The translations under genes were made by a program, and so were the position numbers. A stretch of DNA of 45,791 nt from Octopus sinensis (Eukaryota), in contig NW_021834985.1 in NCBI RefSeq assembly GCF_006345805.1, positions 1-45,791 of the forward strand. Direction: 5' to 3'. This document shows, piece by piece, positions 194 to 30,012 of the stretch; the stretch's first letter is position 1, and every line of letters starts with the position of its first letter. The notes beneath the pieces were generated by a model. That model saw nothing but the letters and a program-made list of their open reading frames with translations. It was not told where the DNA came from and ran no database searches.

Positions 194-817
194 ATTAGAA
201 TGGTTAGCATGCCGGAGAAAATGCTTAGCGGTATTTTATCCGGCGAGCTGGCAGAATCGTTAGCACGCCGGGCGAAATGCTTAGCGGTATTTCGTCTGCC
301 GTTACGTTCTGAGTTCAAATTCCGCCGAGGTCGACTTTGCCTTTCATCCTTTCGGGGTCGATAAATTAAGTACGAATTACGCACTGGGGTCGATGTAATC
401 GACTTAATACCTATGTCTGTCCTTGTTTGTCCCCTCTGTGTTTAGCCCCTTGTGGGCAGTAAAGAAATCGGTATTTCGTCTGCCGTTACGTTCTGAGTTC
501 AAATTCCGCCGAGGTCGACTTTGTCTTTCATCCTTTCGGGGTCGATAAATTAAGTACCAGTTACGCACTGGGGTCGATGTAATCGACTTAATACCTATGT
601 CTGTCCTTGTTTGTCCCCTCTGTGTTTAGCCCCTTGTGGGTAATAAAGAAATAGGTATTTTATCCGTCTTTACGTTCTCAGATTAAATGCCGCCGCGATC
701 AGCTTTGCCTTCTTCCTTTCGGGGACGATTAAACAAGTATCAGTTGAGCACTGGGGTCGATGTAATCGACTTACCTCCTCCCCTGAGATTGCTGGCCATG
801 TGCCAAAATTTGAAATC
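194..817 (+). mobile_element. Older SINE-A copy (A1 tail) split by a younger A2 insertion; host parts 194-241 and 654-817
   Basis: Degenerate head (ttagcatgccggagaaaatgcttagc) to 241; body resumes at 654 and ends gccatgtgccaaaatttgaaatc; ggtattttatcc duplicated at 230-241 and 654-665. Confidence 0.8.
242..653 (+). mobile_element. tRNA-derived SINE-A2, head plus 2 tandem 184-bp bodies
   Basis: A-box-like tggcagaatcgtt, B-box gagttcaaattcc; ggtatttc recurs at 286 and 470 and ggtatttt at 654; 12-bp TSD. Confidence 0.85.
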
Positions 818-904
818 AATATTAAAAACCCGACATGATGTGGTAGACGTAAGGGTGCTGGATTTCCAAAGTTATGTCCAAAATTTCCAAAGGCTAAAGT
901 GAAG

Positions 905-1313
905 TACTCTCTTTACTTGTTTCAGTCATTTGACTGTGGCCATGCTGGAGCACCGCCTTTAGTCGAGCAAATCGACCCCGGGACTTATTTTTTGGAAGCC
1001 TAGTACTTATTCTATCGGCCTCTTTCGCTGAACCGTTAAGTTACGGGGACATAAACACACCAGGATCGGTTGTCAAGCGATGCTTGGGGGACAAACACAC
1101 AAACATATACACACATACATATATATATATATATATATATATATATATACGACAGGCTTCTTTCAGTTTCCGTCTACCAAATCCACTCACAAGGCTTTGG
1201 TCGGCCCGAGGCTATAGCAGAAGACACTTGCCCAAGGTGCCACGCAGTGGGACTGAACCCGGAACCATGTGGCTGGTAAGCAAGGTACTTACCACACAGC
1301 CACTCCTACGCCT
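905..1313 (-). mobile_element. SINE-B, full length (tRNA head, CORE-like segment, internal (TA)/(TG) microsatellite, 3' domain, (AAAGAG)-type tail)
   Basis: Minus strand reads aggcgtaggagtggctgtgtggtaag...gggttcagtccc...ccttgggcaagtgtcttct; colinear with 15686-16127. Confidence 0.85.
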
Positions 1314-1349
1314 AGTGTAGATAATTTTTTTCTTTTCTTTTTTTTTTAC

Positions 1350-1556
1350 AGATTTGGCACTCTACCAGTAATTTTCAGGTGGGGAGGTAGTTAATCGATT
1401 GCATCAACCCCAGTGCTCAACTGGTACTTATTTTATCGATCTTGAAAAGATGACAAGCAAAGTCGACCCCGGTGGCATTTGAACTCAAAGCATATAGAAC
1501 CGGAAGAAATACTACTACGCATTTCGTCCGGCGTGCTAACGATTCCGCCAGCTCGC
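1350..1556 (-). mobile_element. SINE-A, diverged copy
   Basis: Reverse complement matches gcgagctggcggaatcgttagcacgccgg...gagttcaaatgcc...agtaccagttgagcactgggg. Confidence 0.75.
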
Positions 1557-1606
1557 AAAATGATACAATTATTCAGCTACAAATATTTTTTTTTTCCGAT
1601 TGAAAG

Positions 1607-26133: not shown

Positions 26134-26278
26134 ATACGGTACGCCAGTCTACCACAGGATTATTCATTTTTACCAGCAGAGTGGACAGGAACAACGCATC
26201 GCCCAGTCCATTAATCGAAACCACAAGCTTAAGATCATAAGTGCAACACCCTAACCACAAAGCCACATGCGCCTCCAA
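26134..26278 (-). mobile_element. tRNA-derived SINE (family F), degraded
   Basis: Minus strand ggaggcgcatgtggctttgtggttagggtgttgcac...gtggtttcgattaatggactggg. Confidence 0.6.
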
Positions 26279-27199
26279 ACATAGATACATACATACCCCA
26301 CATTACGAATATAAATTGTAAGCGGAACAGTAAAAATCTGCAACACTTTACTCAAGCTCAAAACGGGTCATTCATTTTGTTATCTACATTCCAGCGATGG
26401 AGCTTTGTATCTAATAACTACAAATAAAAGACAACACACATACATACACACACACACACACACACAGATATATATATATGCACACATACATACACACACA
26501 CATACAAACATACATTTAACTCATACATGCATACACACATACAAGCTACAAGCATGCATACGGCATGTATATATACACACATGTAAATTTACCTTCAAAC
26601 ATATAACATATATACATACATATATAAATACATGCATACATACATACAACATATATACATACAACATATATACATACAACATATATAAATGCACACAGAC
26701 ATCTATATATAGTCTTATTATTTTAACAACCCCAGGGTCTCATCATTTTTCGTCTTCCTCATCTTGTATTGTCTTAAGAACATTTTACTTAACCGAAATG
26801 AGGCTTCTTCTCCTTTCTTTCCGACCGCCACATTGCCTACGCTTTTACCTTCTTTTGTTGAACCTATTTTCATTTAATTACTTTGATTTCATGCGTTTTA
26901 AGTTTATTATCCTTTCGATATGGTATTTATGGTTTTTATTTATTGTTGTTTTGGGTTTTGGTCTGTTGTTTCTTTTTGTTGTTGTTTTGCTGGCGTGGAA
27001 TAAGAATTTCCAAATGAGCCAGCTGTGGTTTTCCTTTTTTTTCACGAAATTTATCTTTTGTACTTGTTAATTTGCTTTATTTGCTTTCGTTTTTTACTAC
27101 AAAGATTTGCTTTGTTTAATTTTACTTGTTTTTACATGTGAATTTAATAGCGGCTTTCGTGGTTATTACTTGAGTCGGTGAATAAAATATATTCCTCAC

Positions 27200-27900
27200 G
27201 ACGACGACGGCGGTGGCGGCGGTGGTGGTGGTAGTGGTGGTGGTGGTGGTGGTGGTGGTGGTGGTGGTGGTGAAGAAGAAGAAGATAGAAAAGAGAAAAG
27301 AAGAAGAGGAGGAGGAAGAAGAGGAAGAAAAAGAAGAAGAAGAAGAAGAGGAGGAAGAAGAGGAAGAAAAAGAAGAAGAAGAAGTATAGGGGAATGTGGA
27401 AGATTTCAAACTAAATTGTATCTGGATTGTTACAATATGTATTGCCGAAGTAATTAGTAGTAGTAGTAGTAGTAGTAGTAGTAGTAGTGGTGGTGGTGGT
27501 GGTGGTGGTGGTGTTGGTGTTGGTTGTAATAGTAGTAGTAGTAGTAGTAGTAGTTGTAGTAGTAGTAGTAGTAGTAGTTGTTGTTGTAGTTATCTTTATT
27601 ATCCTCGCTATTATTATTATTATTATTATTATTATTATTATTATTATTATTATTATTATTATTAGAAGAAGAAGAAGAGAATAAAGAAGAGAAGAAGAAG
27701 AAGAAGAAGAAGAAGAAGAAGAAGAAGAAGAAGGATGATAATCATAAAATTTAGCACATCTTCATTTAATGATATTCTCAACGCTTCATTGTGTCGAGTT
27801 GTACGATAAGGATGATGATGATGACGATGACGACGATGATGATGACGACGACGATGATGATTATGATAATAATAATAATAATAATAATAATAACATCAAT
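27200..27900. repeat. Trinucleotide mosaic (GGT, GAA, TAG, ATT, GAT, AAT)
   Basis: Direct reading. Confidence 0.9.
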
Positions 27901-28522
27901 GATATCTTTATTAACAAGAGAAGGTTTACAATCAGATCGAGAACGGTAGAGGACGAATAATAACGATAATCTTACCAATCTACCAATCATTTTACAATTT
28001 CGATAACTTAAATCTCATTATTTCAGTGTAACAACACTTTGGGTCGTGTTTTCTATTACACTATAGATATCGATTTTACGATTTTGGTTATTGCTCTCCT
28101 ATATCTGGTTCTGTGATTAATTCTCATCACTCGCTTCGCTTGTTTCCTAATTCGCGTTGGATTATCAAACTGAACGGTTCAATCACACTGTTCTATGGCA
28201 GCCGAAATAAAAAAAAAACCTGATGAATTTGGCAGAGTCGTTGGAGCAATGAGTAAATTGCTTTGTAGTGTTTGTGCTGATTCCCTGCGATCTGAGTTCA
28301 AATCTCAACGATGTCAGTTTTGTTTTTCATTTATTTTTTTTTTCTAAACAATAAAGTACAAATACTCACAGAGCGATTCCTCCTTCTCTCTCTTTCTCCC
28401 CCTCTCTCTCTCTCTCTCTTTCTCTCTCTCTCTTATTCTCTGTATGTGTGGTGGGGTGTCTGTTTTTCTTTCTGGAAGAGAACGATTAAAGTCAGACCCA
28501 GTGATGGTTGGACTCCATATTA

Positions 28523-28939
28523 AAAGGCGGCGAGCTGGCAGAAACGTTAGCACGCCAGGCGAAATGCTTGGCGGTATTTCGTCTGCGTTACGTTGTGAGT
28601 TCAAATTCCGCCGAGGTCGACTTTGCCTTTCATCTTTTCGGGGTCGATAAATTAAGTACCAGTTACGCACTGGGGTCGATGTAATCGACTTAATACCTAT
28701 GTCTGTCCTTGTTTGTCCCCTCTGTGTTTAGCCCCTTGTGGGTAATAAAGAAATAGGTATTTCGTCTGCCGTTACGTTCTGAGTTCAAATTCCGCCGAGG
28801 TCGACTTTGCCTTTCATCCTTTCGGGGTCGATAAATTAAGTACCAGTTACGCACTGGTGTCGATATAATCGACTTAATCCGTTTGTCTATCCTTGTTTGT
28901 CCCCTCTGTGTTTAGCTCCTTGTGGCTAGTAAAGAAATA
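28523..28939 (+). mobile_element. SINE-A2, head plus 2 bodies, 17-bp TSD
   Basis: ggttggactccatatta at 28506-28522 and 28940-28956; internal junction at 28755/28756. Confidence 0.9.
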
Positions 28940-30012
28940 GGTTGGACTCCATATTAGAAATACCCATGAAAATAGGCTTTTTGTAACGACGGCGTCCATC
29001 AAGAACTGAGGTTCCAAAGCAAGGCATATGTCTAGTGTATCACCTTTCTCCCCACCCCGTCTCTCTTTCTTTCTCCCTCTCTCTCTCCCATTCTCTCTCT
29101 TTCTCTCTCTCTCTCTCTCTATCTCTCTATCTCCCTCTCTCTCTCTCCCCATCGTGTACTATTGCGAGAATAGTGTTGTTTCAGATTGATTTAATAAGTT
29201 GATCAAAAATGAAAGGAGTGAAGTTAAGTTAGTGCTCGTAATCTTCGCAGAATCTTCCTCAAGACTAGTGAGAACCGACCTCAACATCTACAAAGAAAAC
29301 TTTTGTGGAAGATGGAAAACCAGGAAACTCTGGTCCGAATATCTGCAGTAAAGTGAACACCTCTAAATCGAAGCAATGACTGACTCTGTTAGATCCAACA
29401 ACCTAAATTTAGGTCAAGCTATAACTCAAAACACTGATTTAATAGTAAGTTATTGTTGTTGTTACGTTGGCAGAAAGGTGAAGTGTGGTGAAAACTCGGT
29501 AATATCTAACGTACGGCCGGCGGTGAGTGATTGGACGTGATAACCATAGCATAGTTTGGAAGGTCATCCCTACGAGCTTGATGAATATACGCCTGACTTG
29601 TCCATCCTTGTCTTAGCAGACGTCTGTCGCAATTAGCAATATATTGCGAGCATGCCCAATTGCGAAAAACTGAACGTGGTAGATCTGCTAAGAAAGGATA
29701 AAGAACAAGAGAGACACCATCGGCAATTTTTATACTTATATTTCTACGGAGAGCAGAGTTAAAGATGTGGAACAAATTACTAGCGAAGAGGTTAACGGTT
29801 GACATTGGTAGATTGGTCGGACGAACAAAAACCTTCGCATTCCCGGCATATTTCTTCAGGAAAACATCTATCTCATGCGATATATCGTAAAGGGGATAGT
29901 AACGGCACACAGATGTGATTCATATTGATCATTCCACATATTTTGTTATTTGGCAGCAGTACTCAGCACAGCCAAATATCCTGGACAAGTTATGTTTAAT
30001 AAGAATTGACTT

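Follow-up and report, generated by a model that had tools for sequence, protein, structure and literature searches.

The stretch examined here, 45,791 nucleotides of Octopus sinensis contig NW_021834985.1 (referred to throughout as the window), contains about 18 fragments of SINE-A, a tRNA-like short interspersed element (SINE), together with five copies of its subfamily A2, and the subject of this analysis is the architecture of the A2 copies, in which a single head is followed by a variable number of bodies. All frequencies refer to this one 45.8-kb window, which has a G+C content of 37% and is rich in microsatellites. The first ~165 nt are common to A2 and SINE-A, whereas the ~60-nt tails differ: A2 ends in ...TGTTTAGCCCCTTGTGGGTAATAAAGAAATA, while SINE-A copies end in ...AAATTTCAGGCCTTGTGCC... 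followed by (ATT)n. A2 is a SINE-A subfamily whose last ~60 nt have been swapped for a new tail ending in AATAAAGAAATA. The copies are short, non-coding and dispersed, and are flanked by target-site duplications (TSDs) of variable length (12-17 bp).

Four A2 copies are full length and TSD-bracketed, each with one 44-nt head and with two, four, one and two 184-bp bodies, respectively; the coordinates and sequences given for them in an earlier note on this DNA are borne out. The first, E1 (242-653, plus strand), consists of a head at 242-285, which carries the A-box-like motif TGGCAGAATCG, and two bodies of the sequence type designated P, body 1 at 286-469, ending in ...AAAGAAATC, and body 2 at 470-653, ending in ...AAAGAAATA. 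Its 5′ TSD, GGTATTTTATCC, lies at 230-241, and its 3′ TSD, at 654-665, contains TTTT (a possible stop for RNA polymerase III, Pol III) and runs in phase into the body of the older SINE-A that hosts the insertion. This host occupies 197 to 800 of the plus strand, with a head remnant at 197-241 and a body from 654 to roughly 800, the 3′ limit being approximate. E2 (14402-15191, minus strand) is the largest: between a 5′ TSD at 15192-15205 and a 3′ TSD, GGTAACTCCATACA, at 14388-14401 lie the head (15138-15184, preceded by seven bases at 15185-15191), body 1 (14954-15137), bodies 2 and 3 (together 14586-14953) and the 3′-most body 4 (14402-14585). E3 (19598-19817, minus strand; 19582-19833 with its TSDs at 19582-19597 and 19818-19833) has a head at 19772-19817 and a single body at 19598-19771. 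In E4 (28523-28939, plus strand) the 5′ TSD, GGTTGGACTCCATATTA, at 28506-28522 is followed by three bases (28523-28525), the head (28526-28572), a P-type body 1 (28573-28755), a body 2 of the second type, Q (28756-28939), and the 3′ TSD (28940-28956). The fifth copy, E5 (42362-42510, plus strand), is an older, Q-type element, 5′-truncated at body position 24 and ~84% identical to an A2 query composed of the E1 head and body 2. The 5′ ends are ragged: before GGCGGCGAGC, E2 has the 7 extra bases AATATAA and E4 the 3 extra bases AAA, while E1 lacks the first 3, and the unlike extra bases of E2 and E4 suggest different source loci. The most diverged copies are the single-body ones, E5 and E3, the latter marked by a 10-bp deletion in the body and one TSD mismatch, and the least diverged are the multimers.

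All five internal junctions have the form ...AAAGAAAT(A/C)|GGTATTTCGTC, as first described, and in all five the boundary of the repeat unit is the last base of the element. The 184-bp period is found independently by Tandem Repeats Finder, which returns arrays at 285-773 (2.7 copies), 14398-15136 (4.0 copies, 97%) and 28573-28942 (2.0 copies); the 2.7 copies of the first are due to the body of the host SINE-A, which continues in phase after E1. The line between head and body needs to be redrawn with respect to the promoter, since the 44-nt head, taken in the earlier note for a tRNA head, holds only the A-box-like motif, which fits 9 of the 11 positions of TRGCNNAGTGG, evidence at the level of a motif only. 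The B-box-like motif, GTTCAAATTCC, lies inside every body, at positions of about 28-38 and ~53 nt beyond the A box, a tRNA-like spacing. Re-entry at the junction thus takes place within the tRNA-like promoter region, so that a multimer combines a single A box with n B boxes. The consensus body is free of TTTT, so that Pol III read-through would be possible and the whole unit could be transcribed as one RNA. The sole exception among the bodies is E4 body 1, where a C>T change found in no other body creates TTTT at 28632-28635, a likely Pol III stop, and E4 is, on this evidence, probably transcriptionally dead.

Two further observations concern the junction. Across every A2 junction, including those at 461-480, 645-664 and 28747-28766, the sequence AAAGAAATA|GGTATTTC makes up a 6+6 inverted repeat, GAAATA-GG-TATTTC, which we treat as a coincidence of motifs noticed post hoc. 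In the predicted RNA fold the arm TATTTCGTC pairs with GGCGAAATGC of the head, which places the line between head and body in the loop of a ~10-bp hairpin; the fold of the E4 dimer RNA is no more stable than that of shuffled sequences (z = -0.94).

Target sites and nested insertions

On the element strand the TSDs read GGTATTTTATCC for E1, GGTAACTCCATACA for E2, GGTAC(T/C)TATTTTATTG for E3 and GGTTGGACTCCATATTA for E4, with 12/12, 14/14, 15/16 and 17/17 positions matching between the two sides. Every one begins with GGT, and three of the four with GGTA. GGT makes up 1.1% of the trinucleotides of the window, and the probability of meeting it at four of four sites is 1.6e-8, or 8e-8 for at least four of five. 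In the 5′ TSD copy this GGT lies 12-17 bp away from the element and must therefore be target sequence rather than part of A2. The pattern AAAGAAATAGGT, allowing at most one mismatch, occurs 10 times against 0.33 expected, and A2 ends and junctions account for 9 of the 10. Within the window, then, the site of the first-strand nick is strongly biased to GGT, mostly GGTA. The proposal that A2 target sites are GGT-initiated stands for all four TSD-flanked copies, but it is not universal: GGT follows four of the five A2 ends, or four of six if all ends of the A2 tail type are counted, and the two ends that lack it are taken up below. The flank directly after the 3′ TSD of E4 (28957-28964), GAAATACC, is the body start GGTATTTC in reverse complement; this, too, was seen post hoc and may be coincidence.

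Two of the insertions lie inside older SINE-A copies, as had been claimed. E1 sits in the sense orientation exactly at the GGTATTT of its host, and E3 sits antisense in another copy (19463-19911), where the target is GGTACC. E1 demonstrates that A2 can insert in sense orientation at the GGTATTT of its own family. After in silico removal of the four A2 insertions, the resulting empty-site window contains 972 GGT sites on both strands and 13 GGTATTT sites, only two of which lie at the homologous SINE-A position, and E1 occupies one of these two. If GGT were the only rule, the chance that five insertions would reach either homologous site is about 1%; together with the GGTA that begins three of the four TSDs, the position of E1 hints at a target homology longer than GGT. 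The broader claim that A2 inserts preferentially into its own family fares less well, in that E1 did land at GGTATTT but the excess as a whole is only nominal (2 of 4-5 events against a SINE-A coverage of 6.5%, p = 0.023-0.037).

Body lineages and the origin of the multimers

In an alignment of the nine full bodies and E5, the bodies fall into types distinguished by a diagnostic block, TAATACCTATG in P and TAATCCGTTTG in Q, which are three clustered substitutions apart. The two bodies of E4 do carry different blocks, as the earlier note had seen, and P and Q are each present at more than one locus, so that these bodies derive from two lineages, not from divergence within E4. As dimers, E1 is [P,P] with 6 differences between its bodies, E4 is [P,Q] with 12, and the outer bodies of E2, b1 and b4, are both of the Q type ([Q*,Q]) with 15. 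Three such combinations exclude a simple alternative that had been offered, a single dimeric master with a fixed pair of first and second bodies, and no site separates all first from all last bodies among the three dimers. The heads vary as well, at GAA[T/A]CG, where T is found in 7 of 9 other aligned SINE-A and A2 heads and is probably ancestral. All four combinations of head and body variants occur (T with Q in E3, T with P in E1, A with Q in E2, A with P in E4), which indicates that A2 lineages are mosaics produced by recombination or module exchange.

E2 shows how an array can lengthen. Bodies 2 and 3 of this copy have one and the same sequence; they differ from body 4 at five positions, all at 120 or beyond, with no differences over 1-119, and from body 1 at ten positions, all at 96 or below, with no differences over 97-184. 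Of the differences, 9 are private to body 1, and these fall within positions 1-96. Bodies 2 and 3 are thus exact chimeras, with the 5′ part taken from body 4 (1 to ~96-119) and the 3′ part from body 1 (~97-120 to 184), the breakpoint falling within 97-119. With 15 informative sites, at most one switch would arise by chance in about 30 of 32768 cases (~1e-3, a hand calculation). Such a pattern is what a homologous, out-of-register exchange within a dimer [b1,b4] leaves behind, whether it took place by unequal sister-chromatid exchange, by slippage during replication or by homologous template switching on the RNA of a dimer. The addition of bodies by joining at GGT junctions, as the earlier note had it, does not account for the two extra bodies of E2, because it would have yielded whole-body units and not mid-body chimeras. 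The most plausible reading of E2 is a dimer to which two units were added, and the base state of the younger A2 copies is the dimer.

Taken together, A2 looks like a local variant of the known dimeric or tandem SINEs, rather than a proven new mechanism of self-concatenation. The reading that we favour is that several dimeric masters spread and that the arrays then grew by recombination; we prefer it because the young copies are dimers and the old ones monomers, because only one of the five primary sites is GGTATTT, and because the growth of E2 was homologous, and we consider it evenly balanced between right and wrong. How the first dimers came about is a separate question. The unit boundary coincides with the 3′ terminus of the element, and the sequence restarts at an internal GGTATTT, which makes it most likely that the first dimerisation was linked to retrotransposition; duplication of an arbitrary internal segment is disfavoured because the boundary falls exactly at that terminus and at the target motif.

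A scheme that would join these points starts with the partner long interspersed element (LINE), whose machinery would begin target-primed reverse transcription at nicked ends of the form ...(T)ACC-3′. Such a primer would pair with GGU(A) following the tail in the SINE RNA, which would end in ...AAAUAGGU(A...), and ACC-3′ priming of this kind would give TSDs that start with GGT(A); the partner LINE itself would be expected to end in ...TGTGGNNANTAAAGAAAYA. As GGTATTT lies in the SINE itself, with the A box on one side and the B box on the other, insertion there in the sense orientation, of the kind seen at E1, would place an A2 3′ end directly before a body. If the host were itself an A2, a seamless unit with one head and two bodies could then form in any of three ways: by Pol III reading through from the head of the inserted copy, by homology-guided 5′ joining in which the duplicated head is lost, or by deletion between the duplicated heads. 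Template jumping could lead to the same product, if a cDNA end ...GAAATACC-3′ were to re-prime on a new RNA 3′ end. Dimers formed in this way, with an authentic 3′ tail and a consensus body without TTTT, would be competent for retrotransposition and would spread as units with new TSDs, and their arrays would be expected to change in length by out-of-register homologous exchange, for example from two to four bodies in E2. All of these routes depend on one presumed property, priming by ...ACC-3′ on an RNA with GGU after its tail. The stronger statement, that a ...TACC-3′ primer preference of the partner reverse transcriptase makes the SINE concatenate itself, whether through its own internal GGTATTT or by a jump to a fresh RNA 3′ end, we regard as unlikely. 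If true, self-concatenation would be a built-in, RNA-mediated route from a dispersed SINE to a tandem array (a proto-satellite), every unit bringing a B box and a LINE-recognition tail of its own.

Several observations weigh against the favoured reading. A master locus with A2 nested in A2 is absent from the window, as is a partner LINE with an A2 tail. The 3′ flank of E5 reads TATCATCACC (TATC..., not GGT), and no TSD was found for this copy. An element with a related 3′ tail, ...GGCTAATAAAGAAACA, on the minus strand at 6600-6770 (5′ limit approximate), has (TATC)n-TGTC on both sides, so that its tail (6600-6621) sits in a (TATC)n duplication without GGT; this element may represent the 3′ end of the partner LINE, or else another SINE. 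Moreover, the TSDs share words beyond GGT, which hints at target structure beyond the trinucleotide: E2 and E4 have ACTCCATA in common, a word that occurs nowhere else in the window, and E1 and E3 have ATTTTAT. When GGT sites were drawn at random 10,000 times, two disjoint pairs sharing at least 7 nt came up in 3 of the draws (p about 3e-4, for an observation made post hoc). The flanks of the paired TSDs are otherwise unrelated, and a search for homology between the flanks of E2 and E4 found no common host repeat that might explain ACTCCATA. The tRNA origin of the head is also weak: ARAGORN with default settings returns 0 genes, Rfam gives no tRNA match even at E<=10, and relaxed ARAGORN (-ps80) gives a tRNA-like fold at SINE positions ~8-87, straddling the line between head and body, in E1 and E3 only. 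The exclusion of a single dimeric master means that several masters or ongoing recombination must be assumed. Finally, five A2 copies in a single window are too few to separate the readings further, and in particular they do not discriminate between recurrent self-priming and a few dimeric masters.

Among the alternatives, the model of the earlier note holds that A2 primes inside its own family at GGTATTT, that homology-guided 5′ joining erases the incoming head, and that bodies are thus added singly and in situ. E1 shows that the family's GGTATTT can be used as a target, a hidden TSD of 12-17 nt would equal the body start and leave no seam, and both the P/Q heterodimer of E4 and the mosaic head and body haplotypes would fit. 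However, the only nested insertion observed, E1 itself, retained its head; GGTATTT was used at one of five primary sites, where the model needs it in about half of the events; and the oldest copies have the fewest bodies. E2 is a further difficulty, not only in that its extra bodies are mid-body chimeras of their neighbours but also in that its divergence lies in the head and in the 5′ half of body 1, where the model predicts the head and the last body. We consider this route rather unlikely.

Template switching within one reverse-transcription event, in which a cDNA that has reached body position 1 and ends in ...GAAATACC-3′ re-primes on the same or another A2 RNA and so yields one head and n bodies, has the attraction that one rule, ...ACC-3′ on GGU, would cover both the TSD starts and the junction. 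Heterodimers and mosaic haplotypes would be expected from switching between RNAs, and a homologous switch within a dimer RNA would also give the E2 chimeras. Against this, the sequence offers no reason for leaving the template at position 45, the RNA fold, as noted above, is not significantly stable, and the model requires GGU(A) at the RNA 3′ end, a feature that is itself conjectural; we judge it a shade less credible still. An origin at the DNA level is clearly improbable. By this account a microhomology-mediated tandem duplication between the internal GGTATTT and the GGT(A...) of the 3′ TSD, 184 bp apart, was followed by unequal crossing-over; the microhomology pair is present in every A2 monomer and amounts to 7 nt at E1, and E2 makes unequal exchange of a DNA type plausible within arrays. 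Yet the microhomology is just 3-4 nt at E2 and E4, and bodies that arose by duplication should start out identical, whereas those of E4 belong to two lineages shared with other loci and bodies in general differ by 3-8% between essentially perfect TSDs (p about 0.06, a combined hand estimate). That the tandem bodies are an assembly artefact, SINE copies mis-joined, collapsed or expanded, is scarcely believable: such repeats are prone to mis-assembly and bodies 2 and 3 of E2 are identical, but there are site-specific differences within E1, within E4 and between b1 and b4 of E2, the junctions are identical in phase, and perfect TSDs surround each whole element.

Other repeats and searches beyond the window

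Other relatives of the SINE in the window are fragmentary. A head with body positions 1-108, 91% identical to A2, lies at 5875-6026 and continues into a different 3′ sequence, TAGAGTATCCATGAACC..., which may represent a third type of tail within the family. At 31147-31186 there is a head-only fragment of the derived GAAACG type; it breaks off at ...GGGCGAAAT, beyond which the sequence is unrelated. Runs of (ATT)n/(TTA)n adjoin SINE-A copies at 19912-19979, 21340-21408, 21610-21700, 34472-34530 and 42228-42300, and the copy at 42050-42225 is followed instead by a (GGT)n-like run; these microsatellite borders suggest that the partner LINE either targets microsatellites of this sort or gives rise to them. 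That it is of the Dong type is only a guess. A second, unrelated tRNA-like SINE head (GGCGCAGGCGTGGCTGTGTAGC...GGTTCAATCCCACTCC) at 6330-6466 on the minus strand adjoins the element with the A2-related tail. The tandem repeats of the window include a duplication with a ~773-bp period and 94-99% identity (38713-39198 and 39486-39970) within long (TA)n tracts, a 150/301-bp unit repeated nine times (12478-13822, 97%), an 83-bp unit repeated 5.3 times (10516-10956, 98%) within a CAC-rich tract, a 33-34-bp unit repeated 20 times (22519-23202) and a 2.6-kb (ATAC)n microsatellite (34868-37466). A short interstitial telomere-like run, AACCTTAACCCTAACCCTAACCT, is found at 14292-14314, ~75 bp from the 3′ TSD of E2 (14388-14401).

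The window also holds a 234-amino-acid open reading frame (20054-20758, minus strand) that matches the C-terminal part of LINE ORF2 proteins, with a weak zf-RVT match. Its relatives are at most 71% identical, the few with a named source coming from cnidarians, a shrimp and a sea cucumber, and the contig of the second-best relative (P0002) contained no SINE. A 16-mer of the A2 tail, a pattern too short to be specific, matched metagenome and GTDB contigs by chance only, in bacterial sequence, with SINE similarity at 0 of 240 loci; a 25-mer gave 0 hits in viral contigs; and a protein search with the antisense open reading frame of the SINE that spans the junction yielded no candidates. A full-text literature search for the SINE sequence found no paper, and papers on Octopus repeats gave family-level numbers only.

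Comparison with known SINE multimers and target-primed insertion

Alu is the familiar case of a dimeric SINE that amplifies as a unit. Bov-A2, likewise, consists of two Bov-A monomers plus a linker (PMC4324840), and SINE dimers and multimers more generally have been reviewed (PMC10702118). A2 resembles these elements in having at least two related monomers within one TSD pair at independent loci (E1, E2 and E4), with higher multimers also occurring, and in that the unit was probably transcribed and retrotransposed whole. It departs from them in confining the repetition to what follows the A box (B box, body and LINE-type tail), in lacking both a linker and a second head, in having anywhere from one to four bodies, and in that the three A2 dimers have no fixed left or right monomer signature.

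A second comparison is with the SINE-derived satellites (sSats) of squamates, which have units of about 150-180 bp, the terminal one longer and extending to the end of the SINE, and for which unequal homologous recombination and repeated insertion at one locus have been invoked (Vassetzky et al. 2023, PMC10702118), and with the tandem-like SINE arrays of bivalves (PMC11481361). Like the sSats, A2 arrays are head-to-tail repeats, here of 184 bp, of a portion of a SINE, the first unit carrying the head and the repeats reaching the SINE terminus. In contrast to both the sSats and the bivalve arrays, they comprise only 2-4 units, lie between TSDs and are scattered in the manner of ordinary SINE copies; the long homogenised arrays of sSats have no counterpart in the window, where no array exceeds four units. 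Moreover, the boundary of the A2 unit is exactly the 3′ end of the retrotransposon, unlike the arbitrary internal segment of an sSat.

Insertion by LINEs commonly involves microhomology between target and RNA at the start of the TSD, as in L1, which nicks at TTTT/AA and primes on poly(A). Slippage on 3′ repeats is reported for the eel pair UnaL2/UnaSINE1 (Kajikawa & Okada 2002, cited in PMC4758252). A2 is similar in that the first bases of its TSDs are constrained and match what follows the tail. It differs from L1 and UnaSINE1 in that the constraint is GGT(A) and neither an A-run nor a tail microsatellite, in the absence of a simple-repeat tail, and in that the target motif is also found inside the SINE itself. 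Mosaic or composite SINEs arise by module exchange and by insertion of one SINE into another (PMC11481361, PMC4758252), and A2, as a SINE-A with a swapped 3′ tail whose head and body variants recombine, belongs in their company; unlike them, it exchanges its own body as a module, with homomultimers as the outcome. As to seamless 5′ joining of the R2-like kind, a seamless junction would leave no trace, and the sole nested insertion, E1, kept its head.

What sets A2 apart is hence the combination of a unit that runs from between the A and B boxes to the 3′ terminus, the lack of a linker, the variable number of bodies within TSD-flanked copies and a GGT(A) target rule whose motif also lies inside the element. 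The transition from dispersed SINE to tandem repeat is poorly understood, and the published cases invoke unequal recombination or repeated insertion at a single locus, with the first step not demonstrated. The present window holds one nested insertion at the target motif and one array that later grew by homologous exchange. If the pattern holds genome-wide, A2 would be a worked example of seeding by retrotransposition and growth by recombination, and would also supply a clear target-site rule by which the LINE partner could be identified. If there are instead a few dimeric master lineages, A2 would take its place beside Alu and Bov-A2 as an ordinary dimeric SINE, albeit one with an unusual monomer boundary.

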